From: Bugula neritina | Lineage: Eukaryota > Animalia > Bryozoa | NCBI GenBank assembly: GCA_964035545.1 | Contig: CAXIUT010000300.1 | Location: 1 to 12,828 of the forward strand | Direction of reading: 5' to 3' | Length of the DNA stretch: 12,828 nt | Part shown: positions 270 through 12,828 of the stretch, in pieces | Position numbering within the stretch: the first letter of the stretch is position 1 | How the letters are laid out: every line of letters begins with the position of its first letter | Notes under the pieces: generated by a model | Database searches by the model: none | What the model was told of the DNA's origin: nothing | What the model saw: only the letters and a program-made list of their open reading frames with translations | Made by a program: the position numbers and the translations under genes

Positions 270-1154
270 TCAAGGATAGAGTTATTTCTATCTTTTTGCA
301 CTTTTCTTTTTCTACTAAATTCTTTCATATTTTCTTTTCATCCTACTGACATAATCACGTATAATATCTCCAACCTAGAACTAACTTTTGTTGTCTTAAG
401 TCATTGCTTCTCTCACTCCCAAAGGATGATTAATTCTAGATTTTTTCCTTTTTTTCTGACTAATCTAAATGTCTTTCAAGTGATTTTTAACATCTAAATC
501 GTAGTGAGTTATTTAGCTTGTAGGTAGATAGTGACTATGAGATCTATTTTTTATGGGTAGATAATTCGATGGAAGAAGTTCTTCTATTTTTTTATTTTTT
601 ACTATTGACTTTTTATCTCGATTTTTTGGTTTTAAAGAACTGATTATGTTTCTGTTGGGAGGAAATTTCGATCCCTTTATTTGTCTTGGACTTTCTTCTT
701 TCTTGTCCATGATAGCTCCCATAGTTTGAATTTATTCATCAATCATATTATCTTTTCTTGGATACTTTTAAACCCAAAGAGTTGATTTTTTCTTATTTAC
801 TTTTTATTATTCTTTTTATTCATTATTTATTTTTTATTATGGTGTTTGAGGGTCTTCTTCATGATTTTAGGAAGTTATTTTTTTTTATGTCATCATATTT
901 TATTGATGAACAACCATGAATTTGACAAGTTAGTTTATAGATAAAGATGTTTTTGGATCTAGATATTTACTATTTTCCATTGATTTCAATTGACTATGAA
1001 TTTTCAAGACCAAAGCGATGAACTTTTATTCGTCTGCTTCTTCATTTTTATAAAACTTGATGATTCTTTTTTGCAGAATATAGAGAAGTGAGTCAATGCA
1101 TTGATCATAGCACTATTCTTGCGATCGAGTTGCAAATCCTGAATATATCGACAT
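270..1154 (-). CDS. Hypothetical protein, 294 aa, intronless (UAR=Glu)
   Basis: ATG at 1154, open to TGA at 270-272 when TAA/TAG are read as Glu (885 nt). Begins MSIYSGFATRSQEECYDQCIDSLLYILQKRIIKFYK, followed by a K/E-rich low-complexity region. Contains the track ORF 513..722 in frame. Confidence 0.85.
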
Positions 1155-1193
1155 AACTATTAAATTATAAATGAGCTATAAGTTTATAGATGA

Positions 1194-2058
1194 TCAAAAC
1201 ATGCAGCTCTCATAAGTGGGAATCATATACTTGATATTGATATATGCGTCTTCTCCTCCATGTTTCTCCAATATCTATAGAGTTTATTGAATCAAATCAG
1301 ACAAATTTTCATTCTTTCTTTGTCCATAGTCGATCTTATCCCCAATGTTTACTATATTTATCTAAATTTGTACATCTCTTGTTTTTGAACATGTTGAAGA
1401 CTGGTAGGATCTGTCTGTAGTAAGGAACTAAAGCCTAGCCAATCATCTCACCTGCCAATACTAGTCTTTGAATCTTTTTCAAAGTAGAACACATAATATC
1501 ATGACTTTTTGTGGAAAGAGCTTCTAAAGTTATGGATTATTTACTTTTGATAGGAATGATGAGCTGAGGTAAAACTGGAAGTAGTTTATTTGGACTCTTC
1601 TCAATGAGTTCATCGATTCCTTGACAGGCTAAAAATTTATAGGGATCTTGAGTTTCTCTGAGTCCTTCAAAGAAAATGGGAAGGTGCAAGTGATAGTCGA
1701 GATGTTCTGGTTCCATTTTCCAAGTTAACTAAATAAATTTAGATTTACTTTTCTGATAGCTCCTTGGAAACTTACTCCTACAGGTAAATCACCTCTGTCA
1801 TAGTACTTTTTAAAGAGAGTTGTTTCTCCTAGTTTTCTACTTTATTGATATTATACGAATCGTTTGCGAATATATTTGATTTGGGTGCTTTGGGGACAGA
1901 TTGATGTTTTTTGGGGGCAAGAGATGAACTATCTAAATAGATTGGGAATTACTTCCTCCACTTCCTGTAAATTTGCTATTGATATTCATCAAGTTGGAGA
2001 GTTCTTTTGTTTTTTTATGTTCAGGAGAGTAGGCTCTTTTCTTTGCAGGGTATAACAT
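1194..2058 (-). CDS. PACRG: Parkin co-regulated protein (axonemal inner-junction protein), 253 aa, 5 introns
   Basis: Spliced translation gives FKKYYDRGDLP, LDYHLHLPIFFEGLRE, LLPVLPQLIIPIKKAL, GEALVPYYRQILP and [34 protein letters not shown], the characteristic PACRG motifs. Introns at 1933-1952, 1837-1856, 1729-1748, 1524-1544 and 1352-1373. Confidence 0.96.
1352..1373 (-). other. Spliceosomal intron, 22 nt (PACRG intron 5)
   Basis: gtacaaatttagataaatatag; removal restores KNKRLNIGDKIDY. Confidence 0.9.
1524..1544 (-). other. Spliceosomal intron, 21 nt (PACRG intron 4)
   Basis: gtaaataatccataactttag; removal restores the conserved IIPIKKAL spacing. It is a multiple of 3, so support comes from homology rather than reading frame. 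Confidence 0.8.
1729..1748 (-). other. Spliceosomal intron, 20 nt (PACRG intron 3)
   Basis: gtaaatctaaatttatttag; removal restores GAIRKLTWKME. Confidence 0.92.
1837..1856 (-). other. Spliceosomal intron, 20 nt (PACRG intron 2)
   Basis: gtataatatcaataaagtag; needed to join the N-terminal exon to the ETTLFKKYY frame. Confidence 0.8.
1933..1952 (-). other. Spliceosomal intron, 20 nt (PACRG intron 1)
   Basis: gtaattcccaatctatttag; matches the GTA...ATTTAG pattern and length of the other introns and restores frame together with intron 2. Confidence 0.8.
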
Positions 2059-2256
2059 TTCAGTTTCAATATAAATATTAAAATTATTGCTTCTTTTATT
2101 ATCTTAAATTGAAATTTGAACTTATTATCATGATTGTATGTTTCTAATATTTTTTTGTTAAAAATTATTTAAAAAGAACTTCAATATCTTTTTATTGTTA
2201 ATAAATATAGAGTTGTTATTTAAGTTCTTGATAAAATAAAATATATCTATAATTTG

Positions 2257-3548
2257 ATGCAAAAGAATAAAGAAAATTTCCAAAGCGAACCTAAAGGAGA
2301 TCGCTTCATTCCCAACTAAATTAGGTCCTGCGCCTTCCAGGTTGAGTACAATCGACCAACCCGATAAACTTCCGGGTCAAACTACGAAGAACTTCTTGGA
2401 AAAGGAATCCTCGATGAGATTGATCTCCTATCCAATCACAAAATAATGTCATTCAGTAACAAACCTCATCAAGATGCCACAAAAACTCTAAACAAACCTG
2501 ATATCACTAAAACTTTTAAGAAAATCGAACCATTTGGAGAGAAAAAAGTTCGCAAGATTAGTAAAAAACCTTACAAAATTTTGTAGGCTCCTAACCTACA
2601 AGATGATTTTTATCTTAACCTCTTAGATTGGTCTGATAACAATCAAATAGCTGTTGCTCTTGACTCATCTCTATACATATGGTCAGGTTGTTCTTCTGAT
2701 GTGAGTAGACTTTACTAAACTAATCAGATTAATGACTATATCTGTTCAGTATCATTTTGTGATGATAATAAGTTAGCATTTGGTAATAGCAATGGGCAAA
2801 TCAAAATTTATGATATTTGTAAAAAAAAAAAAATTAGTAGTTTTGAAGGTCATTATGGAAGAGTAGGAAGTCTTGATTGGTCGAGTGGACTTCTGGCTAG
2901 TGGTTCTCGAGATGGATTTGTTGCTACTTGGGATCTTAGATCAGGAATGATCAATAGATATAGAGCTCATACTCAGTAAATTTGTGGTTTAAAATGGAGT
3001 CCTGAAGGTAACTATATCGCTTCTGGAGGAAATGACAATAAATTAGTTGTATATTCTAGTAAAGGTAACAATGAATTGGTTAAATTTCATGAGCATAAAG
3101 CAGCAGTTAAGGCTATTGGTTGGTGTCCAAGTAATCCATCAACATTGGCCTCTGGAGGAGGAACTGCAGATAGACATATTCGTTTCTTCTCTACTCAATC
3201 TTGCTAACAGAATTATAGCATAGATACAGGTATTTATCAATTTATTTAGGATCTCAAATATGCAATTTAGTTTTTTCAAAGATATCCAACGAAATGATAA
3301 CTACTCATGGGTATAGTTTGAATCAGATCAACCTATGGAATACTAATAGTAACTGGGAACAGAAGTCTGTGAATAAAGTAGCAACTCTTACAGGGCATAC
3401 TTACAGAGTTTTATATCTTGCTATGAGTCCTTCAGGAGAATCTATTTTGACTGGAGCTGGAGATGAAACTTTAAGGTTCTGGAATGTATTTGATAGTTCT
3501 CAATACAAGAAGCATGAAACCTTATCTTTCCAAATGGACTTAAGATGA
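2257..3548 (+). CDS. FZR1: Fizzy-family APC/C coactivator (Cdh1/FZR1-like or CDC20), WD40 propeller, 423 aa, 1 intron
   Basis: C-box-like GDRFIPN, KIMSF, RKISKKPYKILEAPNLQDDFYLNLLDWS, HTQEICGLKWS, SGGNDN, HKAAVKAIGWCP, SGGGTADRHIRF, DTGSQIC, GHTYRVLYLAMSP, GAGDETLRFWNVF, C-terminal DLR*. Family assignment is firm; Cdh1 versus Cdc20 is less so. Confidence 0.93.
3230..3249 (+). other. Spliceosomal intron, 20 nt
   Basis: gtatttatcaatttatttag; removal restores the conserved IDTGSQIC. Confidence 0.93.
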
Positions 3549-3675
3549 GTATTTTTCAAACTTGATATCTATATTTATTGTTATTAAGATTTTCTTTGAA
3601 GTATTGTGAATATTGAATTCTAATATATTTATTTTTTTGATTTAATTATATTAAATATTTCATCATAAATCTTAT

Positions 3676-4298
3676 ATGGGTAGAGTAAGAACAAAAACAG
3701 TCAAAAGAGCAGCTAAGATCCTCCTTGAAAAGCACTATCAAAAGCTCACTAACGATTTCCACATCAATAAGAAAATCCTTTCTGAAGTTGCTAAGGTTCC
3801 AACCAAGAGTCTAAGAAATAAAATTGCTGGCTTTGCTACTCATCTTGTTAAACGTATTCAAAAAGGTCCAGTCAAAGGAATCTCACTAAAAGTTCAAGAA
3901 GAAGAAAGATAGAGAAGATTGGACTGGGTTCCTAAAGAATCTGAAATTAACATCGAAAAGGTATTGAATTCACTATTTAGGTTACTGTTGATTCTGAAAC
4001 CAATGAAATGATTAAGAGAAGAATGGGTGAAGACTTTGCTGCTAAGCTTATGTCAAATCTTTAGATCAAGGCTGCTGAAGTAGTTAAGAAAGATGCTAGA
4101 GGAGGAAGAAGAAAACCTAGAGAAAACAGAGAAAACAGAGAAGGAAGAGGAGAAAGAGGAGAACGCAAACCAAGAGAACCAAAAGAAGAAAAGAAAGAAG
4201 GAAAAGCTGAATAAGCTCCAAAAGAAGAAAAAGTTGAAGAAAAGAACGCTCCTAAACGTGAAGGAAGAAGAAGAGGAGGTCGCTAGGGTCAAGAATGA
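3676..4298 (+). CDS. RPS17: 40S ribosomal protein S17 (eS17) with C-terminal extension, 200 aa, 1 intron
   Basis: [14 protein letters not shown]...[32 protein letters not shown](TAG=E)[10 protein letters not shown]; intron 3961-3980; continues [12 protein letters not shown] to TGA at 4296-4298. Confidence 0.97.
3961..3980 (+). other. Spliceosomal intron, 20 nt
   Basis: gtattgaattcactatttag; removal gives [13 protein letters not shown], resembling the eS17 segment VDxETxEM. Confidence 0.92.
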
Positions 4299-4423
4299 TT
4301 CATTATTTTATACCAATGTTTAAAATAACATTATTCTTATAGGTTCTAATAACATAAAGTAAATTTCTTAGAAATATATATCTCAAATATATTCAAAAGT
4401 AAACAGGAAAACGTTATCAACGA

Positions 4424-4903
4424 TCATCTTAATCTTTTGGGAGTAAATACAGATTTTAGAAGAATATTTTGTTTTTTGATTTTTTATGATAAACTATCTT
4501 TTACTCTATTGTTTTATTTTTGTTTTTATTTAATGTTTTTTAGTTAAAATTGATGAAGTATTCCTTTGATTCTCGAGTTTTCTTTTTTGATGTCTTGACA
4601 AACAAAATCAAGTTCATTGGTGAGCATAGATTGGCAGTTTTTATGAAAAGATTGGGAAGATTTTGATCCTGTATTTCCCAAAGTTGATGGATTATCAGAA
4701 GAAATAGTTGAAATGATAAGCTAGTTATTTTTATTATAATTGATATTTTCTTATTGATGGGTGCCTCCTTCTGTCATAAGTTTTTTTACTCTTCTTCTTT
4801 TAACTTTCTTCTTTTGTTTTTCTAAGAATGAAAAGGTTATTTTGATATCAGATATATGTTTTTGTTTATTTTTTTCTACGTTATTTGATACCTTCCATTC
4901 CAT
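4424..4903 (-). CDS. Hypothetical basic protein, 159 aa
   Basis: ATG 4903 to TGA 4424-4426, open for 160 codons under UAR=Glu (MEWKVSNNVEKNKQKHISDIKITFSFLEKQKKKVKRRRVKK...VFTPKRLR*). Fills the gap between flanking genes; no recognisable domain. Confidence 0.7.
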
Positions 4904-5047
4904 TTATATTCTATATGAAGTTTTCAAAATTAAATCACTGATTAAACCATAATTGAACCCAATAATAAGTAAATTATTCTTGAAAATTAGGGTCAATATC
5001 AGTTTTATTTCTAGAAATAGCAATAATCGATAATAAATTTGTATTAA

Positions 5048-5536
5048 ATGTAAGCTCTAGCATCATACTTAAGACCTCGTAATCAAGGTTCGTTTGATTA
5101 GTAGTTATCTCTTCCTAAAATACCTGAAGTAGTTCATAATCAGTTGAATAAGACTTCTGTTCGAATGAAAAAAGTAAAACAACCGGTTAAGTATGTATCT
5201 GAAACTTCTTTCAGCCCTGAAGAATAACGAATTCATGAACAAGTTAAAATGGTACTACAGAAGCGAGAGAGAAGTCAAGATTAGAATTAAAGAATTATTG
5301 AATTATTGAAGGGAAGATAGTTGATCAAATAAAAAAAAATACTACCTAAAATAAAATAAAATCGAAGCACAGTATAAAAAAGATAGAGTACTAGTCCTAA
5401 AATAATGGGAAATATTTCATCAAGGACAAAAAGTAAGAGTATGAATGTGAAAGTAAGTTTAGATAATATTTTTAAAGATCAAAGTCAGTTTGTTAAAAAT
5501 TATTTTGCTGATATTAGTGGAAAACCTAAAAGATGA
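5048..5536 (+). CDS. Hypothetical protein, 162 aa
   Basis: ATG TAA(=Glu) start at 5048, open to TGA 5534-5536: MEALASYLRPRNQGSFDEELSLPKIPE...FVKNYFADISGKPKR*. No recognisable domain. Confidence 0.72.
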
Positions 5537-5727
5537 AATACAACTAATTCTAATACTTTTTTCTTGATTTATTCACTTCTTATGCCATATCTTATTTCTT
5601 TTCTTTTTCTTTAGCAATATCAAAAAACCATATTAGTTTAATATCAATATCACACAGATAGATAAATCATTAATACTGATGAACTATTATTACAAATCAA
5701 TTATTATTTGATATTATTTTATCAAAA

Positions 5728-8564
5728 ATGAATCTTGCTAAGTACATTTCTTTGTTGTTACTTTTATCCTTGCTCCAAGGATTAGGCATCAGAAAGGATC
5801 AACCCTGCCCATCTATAATAGGTTGTTAAATCTGTAACAATCCTGACTCAGGGTAGTGCGATGTCTGTAGTGAGGATCGTAATTTCTAGAAGTAGCCTGA
5901 TTCTAAAAAACAATGCCAGTGTATTGAGAATAACTGGTTGAATCAGAATATGAGTTTTTGTGATGTTTGTGAGAAGTTGATTCCTCAATGTTAGAGTTGT
6001 AGTTCAAAAGATGATCGATCAACATTCTGTTCGAGTTGTTCTGAAGGATATTTTTGGAATAATACTTTATGTGTTCCTTGCAAGTATAGCAATCCTCACT
6101 GTTTGAAGTGTACTACTGATGGCAAGGATTGCACATAATGCTAAAATGGAACATATCTTGATACAGGTATTTGTCTATCTTGTGGTACGAATTGCAGACA
6201 TTGCAAAAATAGTTCAAAATGTTAAGAATGCGAAGATGGTTCTTTCTTGAATACGACCTCTTCAATTTGTATATCTTGCAATGTTAGCAATTGTAAAACT
6301 TGTACTAAAAGCAATGCATGTGATAAATGCAAAGATGGATTTTATGTAAAAACTAGTGGAACAGTCAGAACAGTCTATAGCTGTCAGGCTTGTATGGCTA
6401 ATTGTTAATCATGTAAGGATAATTCAACTTGCGATAGATGTAAAAATAATTATTTTTTGAACTCTTCTAAAAAATGTGATAGTTGCACCTCGCTACCCAA
6501 CTGTTCCTAATGCTCATCGAATGGAACCTGTACCAAATGCATCAGTGAATAATTTTACACAAGTTAAGGAAAATGTCTTAGTTGTAATAATAATGGCAGT
6601 CATTGTAAAACTTGTAGCACTCCTAACTACTGTTTTACTTGTATAACCAATGAGTACTACCTCAGTAGTGATAATAAATGTGTTAGTTGTGCTTCTTTTA
6701 ACTAAGGTTGCAAAACATGTCAGGAATATCAGTATTGCTTATCATGTACTGATGATAGTTACTTCTTGAGTGAGGAATTACATGTCTGTGCCCCCTGTCG
6801 AGTATGGCTTAACTTCTGCACCAACTGCAAAGACAAATCTACTTGTACCACTTGCTAATCTAAATACTATATCCATGAGGGTTCTTGTCTATCTTGTTCT
6901 TCTCTGTTTGAAGGATGTTCGACTTGCAGTCCTGATTCTTGCGACACTTGTCAAGATGGATACTACTTGAGTTCAGGATAGTGCAAGTTCTGCAGTACTA
7001 AATTTAGTAATTGTGAGAGTTGCACATAATCAACATGCGACAGATGTCTTCCCTATTTCTTTATGGAATAACCCAGTGTATGTTCATCTTGCAACATCCA
7101 TCACTAGCAGTGCAAATCATGCACAAAGGAGCAATGTTTCGAATGCGATCCTCAATTTTTTGTTAAATAAAACTAGTGTTAGAACTGCACTAAATACATG
7201 TAAAATTGCTACAGTTGCCAAGACGTGGACAGATGTATCAAGTGCATAACAGATGAGTACTTTGTCTAGAACTAAACTTGTCTTAATTGCAGTTCATTTG
7301 ATCCCAAGTGTCGTACTTGCGATGGTCGTGATTACTGCACTTCTTGTTTCCAGAACACTTCGTATGCTCATAAAGGAAAATGTATTGATTGTTCTCATTT
7401 TGATTCTAATTGCAAATACTGTGACTAAAAATAAACTTGCACTGGGTGTGTCAGTCAGTAGTATCTGATCTAGAATGGTGCTTGTATTCTTTGTGGAAGT
7501 AAAATATAAAATTGTAGATTATGTGATTCCTACAACTGTTTGTAGTGTACTAACAATAGTTACTATGTAGATAGTGGCAAATGTCCTTCTTGTTCTAGTT
7601 TTGACTAGTTTTGTTAGATCTGTTCGAGCAAAGATGCATGTGTATCTTGTGTGGCTGATAAATCTTTCTTATCTGATAAAAAATGTATTCCATGCACTAT
7701 TATTTAAGATTGTATCACATGCAAAGACAATCATACATGTACTAGTTGTATTTCGAAATGGTATTATCTTGAATAAGGTTCTTGTCATCTTTGTTCTGAT
7801 GTGTTGCCTTATTGCCTCGAATGCAAAAACAAAAATCTTTGTCTTTAGTGCAATGAAGTCAGTTTACTGATCAATGGTTCATGTAGTCTTTGCAGTGATT
7901 TGCTTCCTAACTGTAGAACTTGTGATAGTAAATAGTGTAAGGATTGCAAACCTTCATACTTTTTGGATAAAGGAGCATGTTCATCTTGCCAAGTAGTCGA
8001 TGCCCAGTGCAGTGATTGTGATGGCAAATCTTGTTTTAAATGTAATAATGGTTTTTATCTGAATTCTAATAAAAAATGTTCAAAATGTATGGACAACTGT
8101 GCAGTATGTATCTCTAAAACTAATTGCACATTATGCAATACTAATTCTTATTATGAAAATAAAACTAACTAATGTATTGAATGTTCAACTAAAATAAGTT
8201 ATTGTTAGAAATGTAAATCATCTACCTAGTGTGTTAGTTGTTCAAAAAAAGCTATTTTGGTTTAAGATTTAACTTGTAGATTATGTAGTAGTTTGATTTA
8301 AGGATGTACTATTTGCAGTGATGCTTCAACTTGTCAATAATGTTAGGCTAATTGGGCACTAGATAATGGAAAATGTTCAGAACATTCATCGTCAACTGTC
8401 ATCATCATAGTCTGTGTGGTTGCTGGAATAGTAGCGATAGCAAGTGTGGGTACTAATTATCTTATTTAGCATATTTCGTTATGAAGAGAGGTAAAAAGGG
8501 AGATCGACCGCATAAATCAACTACTTTGCTTTCAGAAGAAGCCAATGCGCCTATAGCAGAATGA
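5728..8564 (+). CDS. Cysteine-rich (CXXC / furin-like repeat) type I membrane surface protein, 938 aa, 1 intron
   Basis: Signal peptide MNLAKYISLLLLLSLLQG; about 870 aa of CxxC repeats with aromatic-rich linkers; hydrophobic segment VIIIVCVVAGIVAIASVAYFVM followed by KRGKK; short tail to TGA 8562-8564. In frame with track ORF 7963..8172. Confidence 0.92.
8450..8469 (+). other. Spliceosomal intron, 20 nt
   Basis: gtactaattatcttatttag; removal completes the TM helix and basic stop-transfer segment. Confidence 0.88.
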
Positions 8565-8629
8565 TCTCATCTATTCAATAACAATAATTATATTTATATT
8601 CTTTTAAAGAGATATATAAAACACTAATA

Positions 8630-10759
8630 TCACTAAGTTGATTATTTTACTGGTTTTGTAGCAGTAGAAGAGAATTCTTTGGCATTAGATCCAAAAATAA
8701 AATGTTATTTTTATTTTTATGTCAATTTTTGATCAATAAATCGATTAAATCCCTGTAATTATTCGATATGATTACTAGCATTATTCTTTATTACTGTTCT
8801 TACTACATTATTAAATGTTTACATTGGTTTAGTCTGACTAAAAGAGTAGATTTATCACATTTTAATTTTTTAATCTCCTGTTTTAAACTACGAACATCCC
8901 ATTAGCTATACTTTTTACCTGCACTCATTCGACTTATTTTGCTATTCTGACTACATCCATCATCATCTTAGAAGACAGGTTATGGATTTCTTTATAAAAA
9001 TTATACTTTTGCTGTTATCTTTTAATTCTAATCTTGAAGTTATGCATTAGCTCGAACATACTCCTTCATTTGAATTTTCATTTAGAGAATAGCTGTACTC
9101 AGAGATATTATTCTGCCTAAAGTATACTGATTCTATACGAAACTTGATTGATTGACTGTTTATCTATTTTATATTGTTCTGCTTTTCTATTTTCTAATGC
9201 TTGGGTTCTTGCTAATTATACTTGTTTTATTTAAAATTTGTGGTTGTTTTTAAGGATTAATACTTTTTTGTAAAGTTGATAGTTATTTTTAATAATCAGC
9301 CAGTTTATCTAGAAGTGTTCTTTCGTTTCTTTAGATTTGTTAGTTCTTTTTTTTCAAACTTATATTATTTTAGTTGATTTAGCGTATAGAAGCTTATAAC
9401 CTTGTGATATCTTTTTGTAAAAATTGTACTCTTTATTCCATTTGTTGATAGGTTTGTCCATTGATTTCTTCTTGTTTGTCTTTTTATCCTTTTATCTGTT
9501 GCATTCTTATATCTTTATGTCTGTTTTAACTTTATTATAGCATTAGTTTTTGTTTCAAATCTAAATTTTATGAAGTTAGAGTCTCCTAGAATATTTTATA
9601 TTGATGTATTTTACCTTTAAGAAGAAGTATCTAATTACTCATCATATCTTTTTGTGCTCTTTACTCTTAAAGAATACCTATTAATTACTAATATTTTGGA
9701 TCCAAATCGCTAGTCATTGAAGGATTCGATACATTCTTTTTGCTATTTATTTTGATAGAATTAGCAGCTACTCCAAATTTTAAAGTATTAAGAGTTTATC
9801 CAATACTTTATTCTGTTTGATTTATTGTACATATAACTATTGTTTTTGAATTGCCTGTCAAACAAGGTTGCAGGATTCTTGTCAATCTTGAATCTCTAAA
9901 ATTTATATAATTATTTCTTTAACTTAGTGATCTTATTACATTAGATAAAGCTAGTAAACTTTTGTTTATATTTTAACTTTCTTTCTTTAGTAGTCCAACC
10001 GCATTGGTTTTACTGATGCTTTCACTGCCTGCAAGATCGACCATGCTGATCGTAGCAACAGATGAAGTTAAATCTTTGTGAGCTACTTCCAAGTTGATTC
10101 TGAAGATAGTGTGAGAACGAGAAGATTATTCGTTGATGTTATTGCATGCAAATTTTCTTCTACCTTCTCCATCACTGTACAATCTAAGTGAGTCCTCTTC
10201 ATTGTTGACTTAATCTTCAATTAGTTATTGTATAATTGCATTCTTTTTGGTATCATCTCGTATGTCAAGGAATTTTGATCCATTATCTCTGCTTAAAAGG
10301 TCAATTATGTTTTAGTTATAGATTTAAAAGTAGTTTATTCTAACTTTAGCTACCATCTGTTCATCTTATATTCTTCTGAATATCTCTTGGATAGTGAGAG
10401 GAATGATTCCTGGATTGTATTCAACTCCTTTCATAGTGTAAGTCTTGCCGGATGAGGTTTGTCCGTAGGCAAGGATGCAAGCTTAGTATTAAATAAAATA
10501 CCATTATAGCCTTCAAAGAGGTGCTCGATGATAGGAGTCATTACAGTTTTGAATATTTATCTATTTTTGCAGTTTTAATTGAATACTTCGTCTTCATTAT
10601 GACATTATTACTAAATTCAAAAGGCTAAGCTGAGTTGCGATTGACCAGAACTTCTTGTCTTGACGCATTTATCAGAGAGATCTCATCCATTAGTATAGGT
10701 TTTAACCTTACAAAAGTCTTAATGAACTCTGGATTTTTGTTAGTATCGCCTAGACGCAT
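8630..10759 (-). CDS. N-terminal-motor kinesin with coiled-coil tail (kinesin-7/CENP-E-like P-loop), about 688 aa, 2-3 introns
   Basis: [26 protein letters not shown] (P-loop), [24 protein letters not shown] (switch I), VDLAGSE (switch II), [31 protein letters not shown]. Introns 10592-10611, 10482-10501 and probably 8753-8775. Without the last intron the stop is at 8722-8724 (665 aa). Confidence 0.92.
8753..8775 (-). other. Probable spliceosomal intron, 23 nt (kinesin intron 3)
   Basis: gtaatcatatcgaataattacag; removal extends the ORF through the coding-like stretch 8633-8752. No homology support. Confidence 0.55.
10482..10501 (-). other. Spliceosomal intron, 20 nt (kinesin intron 2)
   Basis: gtattttatttaatactaag; removal restores [12 protein letters not shown]. 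Confidence 0.93.
10592..10611 (-). other. Spliceosomal intron, 20 nt (kinesin intron 1)
   Basis: gtaataatgtcataatgaag; removal gives FEFNEVF, matching the kinesin FxFDxVF segment. Confidence 0.88.
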
Positions 10760-10911
10760 TACTTCAAAATTAATAAACTATTCAAATCATACATATAAAA
10801 TAAACCTCCATTTTTACAACCAAATAATATTCTAAACAAAACATCAAATCAATTCTATCCTATAAAGTTAAGATTAAATAAACTAGTTATGTTTATAGAT
10901 GTAGAACTTGA

Positions 10912-11369
10912 TCATAATTCGGTGGGTTCGTTATCTTGTCTGTCTTTGATTGTTTTTTTCATTTATCCGACAGCATATTTCACAAAATCTTAGAAGGTTC
11001 TTTAGCCTGATTCATAGGATAAGGGTTGTTATTTATTTTGACCAAAAAATTTAATTGTAGGATATCCTTGAACTTGATAAGGTTCACCTGCTGCTCTTTC
11101 TTCTTCCATATTAACTGCTCCTACTCGTATCACTCCACCTAAAATCTATGCTGCTTTTTAAAATTCAGGAGCAGATGACTTGCAATGTCCACACCAAGGA
11201 GCTGTATCGATCTAAATGTACCATAGAATTCAACAAGCCAGAAATCATCGCTATTTACGACTTAATTTTTGAAGTTTTTGGCTGTGAGCTTGAAGACAGC
11301 TGAATCATCGCTGAAAAGTGCTAAGGTTGAGGCTAGACAAAGGGCAAAAACCACTAGGAATTTAGTCAT
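10912..11369 (-). CDS. Single-thioredoxin-domain protein disulfide isomerase (ER), 145 aa, 1 intron
   Basis: Signal peptide MTKFLVVFALCLASTLA; WLVEFYAPWCGHCK active site; VQGYPTIKFF; C-terminal PTEL* resembling a KDEL-type retention signal. Confidence 0.93.
11202..11221 (-). other. Spliceosomal intron, 20 nt
   Basis: gtacatttagatcgatacag; removal restores EFYAPWCGHC. Confidence 0.94.
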
Positions 11370-11406
11370 TGTATTATTACGTGTAAATAATAATTATGAA
11401 GGCAGA

Positions 11407-12621
11407 TCATCGAATATCAAAATGGGACCATTCTTTGTAGGAACAGCTATCAAAGAATTTCCAGATATGAAGCATTTGGTCTCCTGCTCCTGTAGCTACA
11501 AATTTTCCTCCAGGACTAAGAGCAGAATATAGGACTCTATTTTTGTGGCCATGGACTGTCAACTATCTCTTTCCCTACATATTCCAGATAATTATTTGGT
11601 TGAGTGAGAATCCTTGGCAACTTAATATTTATGGAGAATTGGCTGAGGAAATGAGACTGCATATTTGTGAACCTGTATCTATTTAATTGACCACTCCTTC
11701 TGCATCTTTCCAGAATTTAATTTTTCTATCATGGGTGCCTCCTCCAGTGATAAGGGTATTGGGAACGATCCAATCCAAAGCTTTAACAGCTGCTCTGTGT
11801 TCATAGTAGTCGAGATACTAATCGGCTTTTCTGAGATCGTAGATATAGACATAGTTATCATTTCCTCCTGCAGCTAGATAATTTGAATAGACTTTGACTC
11901 CACATATTTATTGATCATGGTATCTGGGAAAGGTTTTGACGATACCAGTAGATCTATTATCGTAGGTTTTGATGTTTCGATCTTTGGAGCCAGTGTAGAT
12001 ATTATTTTCATACCATTCAATGCAGGATATTCTTTATTGATGAGGTTTGAAAGAGGTGATAGTTTTTTGTTTGTAGTAGTCGTAGCAGTGAAAGGAACCC
12101 TAAGAGTATCCGATAGCTATTTTGGTTGTAGTTGGAGAAAAGTGGATGGCGTTTATTTATTATCTTATGTAGTTAAAAGTGTATTTCCGGTATAAAGAAC
12201 TATCGAATTAATCTTACATTGCCATATTGTAGAAGTAGAGGTTGTTATTGGCAGCTGCGCAGATGAAGTTGTTGTAGGACCAGTCTAGGAGGTCAGAATA
12301 GTAGTTATCGGACCATCCTTGGACTTTAAATTTTCTAATAGGTTTTTTATTTCTTTTGATTCCTGTGATTTATTTATGTTATTTTTACTTTTTTTATCTT
12401 TTATCGAGAGTATACTGTCTGATTGATTTGTTTTTGAAGAGTGACTATGATAGTTATGAGTGGTAGGAAGAGGTAGATTTATCTGATGAGGTTGATGATG
12501 AACGAATGCTATACTTTTCACTGTCTATTTTACGAATATGTCGATCATAGATTGATTTTCTTTTGCCTTATGATTTGGGGGTCAAGGGAGGAGTTTAGAA
12601 GGATGGGTGGGTATTTTTCAT
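11407..12621 (-). CDS. Divergent CDC20/Fizzy-family WD40 protein with IR tail, 404 aa, intronless
   Basis: ATG 12621 to TGA 11407-11409. DNYYSDLLDWS, TGSKDRNI, HDQEICGVK, AGGNDN, HRAAVKALDW, TGGGTHDRKIKFW, IDTGSQIC, GFSLNQIIIWN, GHKNRVLY, TGAGDQMLHIW, C-terminal FDIR*. Confidence 0.92.
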
Positions 12622-12703
12622 AGGAAGTATATTATGCAAATTGACTATTTAATATAAGCAAGATATGATTTGGTTTTATATGTTGATATCAATAATATAT
12701 TAT

Positions 12704-12828
12704 GGGGTTGGGGTTGGGGTTGGGGTTGGGGTTGGGGTTGGGGTTGGGGTTGGGGTTGGGGTTGGGGTTGGGGTTGGGGTTGGGGGTTGGGGTTGGGGTT
12801 GGGGTTGGGGTTGGGGTTGGGGGTTGGG
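12704..12828 (+). repeat. Right telomere, (GGGGTT)n
   Basis: G4T2 tandem repeat running to the last base, inverse orientation to the left end; two units have G5. Confidence 0.98.

Follow-up and report, generated by a model that had tools for sequence, protein, structure and literature searches.

The contig CAXIUT010000300.1 of the Bugula neritina assembly GCA_964035545.1, analysed over its full length of 12,828 nt (hereafter the window), carries ten genes whose source very probably (about 93%) reads the codons UAA and UAG (together UAR) as glutamate (Glu) and uses UGA as its only stop codon. These assignments constitute the peritrich-type nuclear code, NCBI translation table 30. The code itself is already known; the finding is real, not new. 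Peritrichs translate UAR as Glu (PMC11687900, PMC10553269, PMC4967479), and a passage of PMC4967479 points to its reference 53 for the first report of UAA as Glu in this group. An earlier note on the same DNA, made from its letters without database searches (the sequence-only reading), attributed this code to peritrichs, as opposed to glutamine (Gln) for UAR in most recoded ciliates, and in this it agrees with the literature (PMC11687900, PMC10553269).

Gene models built with UGA as the sole stop extend over positions 270-12621 and cover 85.6% of the window. Their 3650 sense codons include 121 TAA and 52 TAG in frame and no TGA, and TGA terminates all ten. In the 3329 codons of the first eight models, ~93 in-frame TGA would be expected from the TGA rate in the two other frames, and none was observed. 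The sequence-only reading had placed ten genes in the same interval, every one ended by TGA, and the rebuilt models gave the same result; all the in-frame stops that it had named in kinesin, in PACRG (parkin co-regulated protein), in Fizzy and in RPS17 (ribosomal protein eS17) were recovered as well, in position and in peptide (9/9).

Glutamate at in-frame TAA and TAG codons

For comparison with distant homologues, stop-free pieces of the conceptual proteins were searched, and the homologues retrieved were aligned by script to the conceptual proteins, which carried an X at each TAA or TAG. The residue facing a stop in solved structures was read with stop-free pieces from metagenome relatives of the window. 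PACRG homologues were gathered with a 162-residue stop-free piece of one such relative, L007, and kinesin homologues with a single 50-residue piece searched against protein representatives, whose 53 matches are ample for three conserved columns and thin elsewhere. The sites are listed below; a dot marks the codon, and Cdc20a and Cdc20b are two Cdc20/Fizzy paralogues.

1435-1437, minus strand: TAG in PACRG (MIG.ALVPYY); Glu in 115 of 120 homologues, GAA in L007
1284-1286, minus strand: TAA in PACRG (DLIQ.TL); Glu in 112 of 120 homologues, GAG in L007
1275-1277, minus strand: TAG in PACRG (TL.ILEKHGG); Glu in 116 of 120 homologues, GAG in L007
2584-2586, plus strand: TAG in Cdc20a (KIL.APNLQDDFYLN); GAG (Glu) in L007, aspartate (Asp) in human CDC20 (RILDAPEIRNDYYLN, PDB 4gga)
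2977-2979, plus strand: TAA in Cdc20a (HTQ.ICGLKW); Glu in 77 of 78 homologue fragments, TAG in relatives L001 and L007
3910-3912, plus strand: TAG in RPS17 (QEEER.RR); Glu in 106 of 107 homologues, GAA, TAA or TAG in relatives
10324-10326, minus strand: TAA in kinesin (YF.IYN); Glu in 25 of 26 homologues
10312-10314, minus strand: TAA in kinesin (IYN.NIIDLL); Glu in 25 of 26 homologues
9796-9798, minus strand: TAA in kinesin (.TLNTLKF); Glu in 21 of 22 homologues
11908-11910, minus strand: TAA in Cdc20b (HDQ.ICGVKV), in the column shared with Cdc20a 2977-2979; Glu in 77 of 79 homologue fragments

The TAG at 2584-2586 had been described in the sequence-only reading as lying at a position that is normally Asp, and human CDC20 does have Asp there.

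Columns conserved at 85% or above number 328, of which 19 are Glu. Nine TAA/TAG codons fall on such columns, and in each case the conserved residue is Glu (chance ~7e-12). TAA accounts for six of these (three in kinesin and one each in PACRG, Cdc20a and Cdc20b) and TAG for three (two in PACRG and one in RPS17). Nine conserved Gln columns are present in the same alignments, and neither codon hits any of them. In Cdc20a, the Pfam Cdc20 profile is matched from position 50 to 136 before the TAA at 2977-2979 and from 138 to 211 after it, so that the codon occupies exactly one profile position, i.e., it is read through. Codetta-like log-odds (log10) point the same way for both codons, with Glu +5.2, Gln -2.4 and lysine (Lys) -5.6 for TAA over 13 sites, and Glu +3.7 and Gln -2.2 for TAG over four. 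As a control, all 43 sense codons with at least five sites were decoded to their standard meaning (43/43), an outcome somewhat helped by the contribution that sense residues make to the alignment score, which an X lacks.

The metagenome relatives comprise 92 loci obtained from exact look-ups and one metagenome scan, in records such as ERR3987275, SRR25749194, JGI 33000736xx-756xx, ERZ assemblies and Logan. Many of them share a block of four genes, G1-PACRG-Cdc20a-RPS17, at 70-90% nucleotide identity, and some share G5 and G6 too (G1, G5 and G6 being window genes of unassigned function). In the comparison with L007 (~72% nucleotide identity), 9 of the 18 sense codons paired with a window TAA encode Glu, as do all 5 of those paired with a window TAG, over a background of 1% (P 5e-14 and 1e-10, respectively). 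When read in the other direction, 5 of 39 window GAA codons lie opposite TAA/TAG in L007, and no CAA (0/25), AAA (0/79) or TAT/TAC codon (0/40) does.

A clade-wide count, made on the window and its relatives after de-duplication at 97%, gives the same contrast. TAA/TAG occupy 19.6% of the cells in Glu-consensus columns (99 TAA and 58 TAG of 802), and their share in other consensus columns is 2.1% for Asp, 1.7% for Gln, 0.08% for Lys and 0% for tyrosine; in Lys-consensus columns TAA was found in one of 1297 cells. Public gene calls carry the same signature. The open reading frame (ORF) calls listed for RPS17 of relatives that end inside the invariant QEEERE motif are 74, 75, 76 or 78 residues long and never 77, and these four lengths correspond to the position just before each of the four Glu of the motif. 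UAA and UAG are interchangeable with GAA and GAG over evolutionary time. The claim of the sequence-only reading that each of the two codons means Glu was borne out codon by codon, by conserved columns, log-odds and swaps with GAA/GAG.

Termination at UGA and the competing readings

TGA was used to delimit the ORFs, which makes its presence at the end of every gene a partly circular result. Four of the ends, those of PACRG, Cdc20a, RPS17 and G6, are independently supported by the orthologues of relatives, and that of PACRG by distant homologues as well. TGA directly follows the last residue in the relatives' orthologues of PACRG (8/8), Cdc20a (24/24), G6 (8/8) and RPS17 (51/55), and the remaining four RPS17 contigs have no TGA within the codons read. 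PACRG ends in ..PTYESCMF followed by TGA, at the same residue as the proteins of Paramecium and Tetrahymena. The C-termini ..DLR of Cdc20a and ..DIR of Cdc20b are presumably the IR tail of co-activators of the anaphase-promoting complex/cyclosome, and the ..PTEL of a thioredoxin-domain protein we take to be a functional C-terminal motif. The TGA ends of G1, G5, the cysteine (Cys)-rich gene and the kinesin tail are those set by ORF delimitation. UGA as the sole stop, as the sequence-only reading had it, therefore stands on its absence from frame throughout the models and on its presence at all readable orthologue ends; UGA-only termination was found across the window and its relatives, that is, in one chromosome and its kin as opposed to a whole genome.

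The alternative that survives best, though still very unlikely, is a context-dependent code in which UAA and UAG mean Glu internally and terminate some genes near their 3' ends, so that some of the modelled C-terminal tails would be untranslated. Ambiguous codes of this kind exist in ciliates, all three stops being so used in Condylostoma and karyorelicts (PMC4967479). In the window, TAA or TAG stands a few codons before TGA in RPS17 (..GGR-TAG-GQE-TGA), in G1 (..KR-TAG-K-TAA-LYP-TGA) and in the kinesin tail, and for four genes (G1, G5, the Cys-rich gene and kinesin) the end is the one set by ORF delimitation. However, TGA comes right after the conserved last residue in every orthologue of PACRG, Cdc20a and G6. 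In RPS17, the last Glu is a GAA codon in the window, and 42 relatives' loci carry TAA or TAG there, in each case with the conserved TGA next to it. A TGA lying past a true stop would not stay conserved in this way. Termination at UAA/UAG is thus contradicted at every end open to a check, and a minor dual role of the two codons may still hold at the four ends set by ORF delimitation.

Scarcely tenable is the standard ciliate code (table 6), under which UAR would mean Gln and the Glu matches would be coincidental. The nearest named relatives, Tetrahymena, Paramecium and Ichthyophthirius, do use UAR for Gln (PMC10553269); Gln also has the second-best score for TAA and for TAG, and one TAA, at Cdc20a position 317, occupies a variable column in which Gln is the most frequent residue (22/69). 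Against this, Glu leads Gln by 7.6 (TAA) and 5.9 (TAG) log10 units, and the conserved columns hit are all Glu even though as many Gln columns were available. In the relatives, GAA and GAG pair with TAA/TAG in 10 of 122 cases and CAA and CAG in 1 of 55.

Hardly more credible is a split code like that of Oligohymenophorea sp. PL0344, with UAA as Lys and UAG as Glu. PL0344 is an oligohymenophorean with UAG as Glu and UGA as stop (PMC10553269), and the TAG evidence taken alone would fit it. The TAA evidence speaks against it, because Lys scores far below Glu for that codon and the six conserved TAA sites are all Glu. It is also at odds with the near absence of TAA from Lys-consensus columns and with AAA never standing opposite TAA/TAG. 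The introns differ too, with a median of 57 bp in PL0344 (PMC10553269) and a length of 20 nt in nine of the ten introns of the window and 22 nt in the other.

The chance that the TAA and TAG codons are real stops, in pseudogenes or through assembly errors, is close to nil: public gene calls on related contigs do all end at TAA/TAG as fragments, but the genes can be read, colinear with their homologues and without a break in frame, across as many as 50 TAA/TAG codons each, TGA alone is absent in frame, and dozens of independent metagenome assemblies show the same pattern. PACRG and its orthologue in a relative are 85.5% identical in protein and ~70% in nucleotides, a sign of purifying selection.

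Under table 30, UAA and UAG would act as ordinary Glu sense codons beside GAA and GAG, with UGA as the sole terminator. Stop reassignment in ciliates involves copies of transfer RNA (tRNA) whose anticodons are UUA and CUA, along with an eRF1 that does not read UAR. By analogy with these ciliates, decoding in the source of the window would be carried out by glutamate tRNAs with UUA and CUA anticodons, and its eRF1 would recognise only UGA and no longer UAR.

Several points weigh against the table 30 assignment. ARAGORN found no tRNA in the window and only a syntenic tRNA-Arg(TCG) in 64 related loci, hence neither of the expected UUA and CUA anticodons, in a sample too small for this to mean absence; nor was an eRF1 gene seen in the window or in the retrieved loci of relatives. 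Numerous TAA codons occupy variable sites and, as expected there, carry no information, and two lie on moderately conserved columns other than Glu, at kinesin position 165 (glycine in 16/30) and Cdc20b position 268 (proline in 75/118). The relatives in the clade-wide count are kin, and their cells are not independent events, with a contrast that is still very large. The assignment is drawn from sequence comparison. The window is one chromosome, and UAA/UAG may terminate a minority of genes elsewhere. Finally, the source is likely, but not certain, to be a peritrich.

A ten-gene mini-chromosome and its source

The window is a whole ciliate macronuclear mini-chromosome with ten genes. Tandem Repeats Finder reports CCCCAA x13.5 at 1-81 (100% matches), the left telomere, and GGGGTT x20.7 at 12703-12828, the right one. 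C4A2/G4T2 caps in the C-rich 5' orientation inward were thus found at both ends, as in ciliate macronuclear chromosomes, and telomere repeats at both ends make the window a complete linear molecule with ciliate-type telomeres. The DNA is not human. Its G+C content is ~30%, and Rfam detects no RNA family in it, ribosomal RNA included. Macronuclear chromosomes of Tetrahymena and Paramecium are much larger than 12.8 kb, and spirotrich nanochromosomes carry single genes. A 12.8-kb, ten-gene, telomere-to-telomere chromosome is unusually small in comparison with the former and bigger than the latter. The literature on peritrich telomeres and chromosome size yielded nothing specific, and no paper giving peritrich chromosome sizes was found.

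The gene models, in order along the window, are as follows.

270-1154, minus strand: G1, conserved, function unassigned; 294 codons with 15 TAA and 7 TAG, TGA at 270-272; a TGA-delimited ORF
1194-2058, minus strand: PACRG; 260 codons, introns 1352-1373, 1729-1748, 1837-1856 and 1933-1952, TGA at 1194-1196; Pfam ParcG, 5e-22
2257-3548, plus strand: Cdc20/Fizzy paralogue a (Cdc20a); 423 codons, intron 3230-3249, TGA at 3546-3548 after the C-terminal ..DLR
3676-4298, plus strand: ribosomal protein eS17 (RPS17); 200 codons, intron 3961-3980, TGA at 4296-4298; best solved structure Tetrahymena eS17, 5.7e-39
4424-4903, minus strand: G5, small, function unassigned; 159 codons with 5 TAA and 1 TAG, TGA stop; a TGA-delimited ORF
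5048-5536, plus strand: G6, small, conserved, function unassigned; 162 codons with 6 TAA and 5 TAG, TGA stop
5728-8564, plus strand: cysteine-rich repeat protein; 938 codons with 24 TAA and 19 TAG, intron 8450-8469
8722-10759, minus strand: kinesin; 665 codons with 42 TAA and 8 TAG, introns 10482-10501 and 10592-10611, TGA at 8722-8724
10912-11369, minus strand: predicted secreted thioredoxin-domain protein; 145 codons, WCGHC motif, intron 11202-11221, ending in ..PTEL and TGA
11407-12621, minus strand: Cdc20/Fizzy paralogue b (Cdc20b); 404 codons with 15 TAA and 5 TAG, ending in ..FDIR and TGA

Pfam's own thresholds are passed by ParcG and by the kinesin motor, which is matched on two pieces and whose domain can be aligned with kinesins P0121-P0173. 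PACRG is colinear with its counterparts from Paramecium, Tetrahymena, an insect and an amoebozoan through to the last residue. For the Cdc20 pieces the top Pfam match is WD40_CDC20-Fz (best 2.8e-30), single pieces falling below the whole-protein cut-off. The closest solved structures to Cdc20a are human CDC20 and Cdh1, and Cdc20b has a sub-threshold match to the same family in its C-terminal piece and 33% identity to the relatives' Cdc20a orthologue. These two divergent genes lie near opposite ends of the chromosome on opposite strands, and the invariant Glu of the H.QE(V/I)CG motif is TAA in both. The thioredoxin match in Pfam is likewise sub-threshold, on a 38-residue piece.

Among the genes of unassigned function, G1 has orthologues in the metagenome relatives at ~51% amino-acid identity, and its longest piece has no match in Pfam. 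Full-length orthologues of G6 occur in 13 relatives' loci. G5 is the weakest of the ten models and is matched by one relative's locus (L010) over 92 codons. The Cys-rich protein has a hydrophobic N-terminal leader and a hydrophobic C-terminal stretch, with sub-threshold Pfam matches to VSP and furin-like families on one piece, and it resembles ciliate surface proteins. Its gene (43) and that of kinesin (50) together carry more than half of all TAA/TAG codons. RPS17 has at 4065-4298 a C-terminal extension of ~70 residues rich in Lys, Glu and arginine that is absent from Tetrahymena and other eukaryotic eS17 and remains in frame in L002, L007 and L091.

The models contain ten introns, all of the form GTA...AG and A+T-rich, and their length is nearly invariant across the window.

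1729-1748, 1837-1856, 1933-1952, 3230-3249, 3961-3980, 8450-8469, 10482-10501, 10592-10611 and 11202-11221: nine introns of exactly 20 nt
1352-1373, minus strand: one intron of 22 nt, in PACRG

Among the relatives, L007 is without the 22-nt PACRG intron, and in contig L091 precisely the 20 nt modelled as the intron of RPS17 are missing. After intron removal, the alignments of PACRG and RPS17 to their homologues are colinear over every exon join.

The left block of the window (270-5536; G1-PACRG-Cdc20a-RPS17, with or without G5-G6) is syntenic in many relatives, L007, L011, L044, L048 and L050 being those compared, but its flanks differ. At the place of the left telomere, L007 runs on into tRNA-Arg(TCG), EF-hand and kinase genes, and the right half of the window (Cys-rich protein, kinesin, thioredoxin and Cdc20b) has no counterpart beside RPS17 in any relative. 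The differing flanks of a shared block imply that chromosome breakage sites or gene order vary within the group. The G+C content of the relatives spans 0.34 to 0.46, yet the N-terminus of RPS17 is 94-99% identical among them.

By its C4A2 telomeres and by Paramecium and Tetrahymena as its nearest named relatives, the source looks like an oligohymenophorean ciliate. RPS17 is closest among named species to Tetrahymena (86%) and Ichthyophthirius (83%), and PACRG to Paramecium (78-80%), Tetrahymena (78%) and Ichthyophthirius (76%). In the PACRG tree, which like the protein comparisons contained no named peritrich, the window and three relatives form a clade of their own (94/89) that sits in a polytomy with Paramecium, with Tetrahymena, Ichthyophthirius and Cyclidium, and with Pseudomicrothorax. 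Named members of the relatives' clusters are other ciliates such as Pseudomicrothorax, Cyclidium and Nassula, and the relatives' contigs end in the same C4A2 repeat. These data agree with a lineage of oligohymenophoreans separate from Paramecium, Tetrahymena and scuticociliates, one that appears to be a species-rich group occurring in many public metagenome assemblies.

Three peritrich genomes show a narrow, Paramecium-like distribution of intron lengths (PMC13685798), a pattern that the 20-nt introns of the window fit. The tree, telomeres, introns and protein affinities are compatible with Peritrichia, and none of them is diagnostic. If the source is a peritrich, no new biology is involved, the code being already catalogued as table 30. 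Quite unlikely, by comparison, is that the window and its relatives represent a separate, non-peritrich oligohymenophorean lineage with an independent change of UAR to Glu. Such a lineage would be a second ciliate origin of this assignment, and it would bear on the frequent joint capture of UAA and UAG.

Annotation and comparison with known codes

The main value of the assignment is practical. The public gene calls met on related contigs (JGI, ENA, NCBI and Logan) are all fragments, cut at TAA/TAG or running into introns; the 111-residue RPS17 calls, for instance, read through the 20-nt intron. Gene callers set to the standard code cut proteins at every TAA and TAG, which leaves a large ciliate group mis-annotated in public metagenomes. 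Re-calling of these contigs with table 30 would restore the full proteins.

The code of the window differs in nothing from that of peritrichs (table 30; Vorticella, Opisthonecta, Campanella and Carchesium), in which UAA and UAG likewise mean Glu and UGA is the sole stop. With the standard ciliate code (table 6; Tetrahymena, Paramecium and Oxytricha) it shares the use of UAA and UAG as sense codons and of UGA as the sole stop, but the amino acid is Gln there and Glu here.

Outside ciliates, the nuclear code of Blastocrithidia (table 31) has UAR as Glu and UGA as tryptophan. The first of these assignments is shared; in the window, however, TGA closes each gene and does not occur inside the reading frames, and the telomeres and proteins are ciliate rather than trypanosomatid. 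A Blastocrithidia-type code was rejected because TGA is never in frame.

The context-dependent codes of Condylostoma and karyorelicts also use stops as sense codons, but they have no dedicated stop (PMC4967479), whereas TGA is dedicated here. PL0344 belongs to the class Oligohymenophorea, like the probable source of the window, and has the same UAG as Glu and UGA as stop; UAA is Lys there (PMC10553269) and Glu here, and its introns are longer. With peritrichs the window shares, beyond the code, a ciliate context of C4A2 telomeres, oligohymenophorean affinities and very short introns in a narrow length range (PMC13685798).

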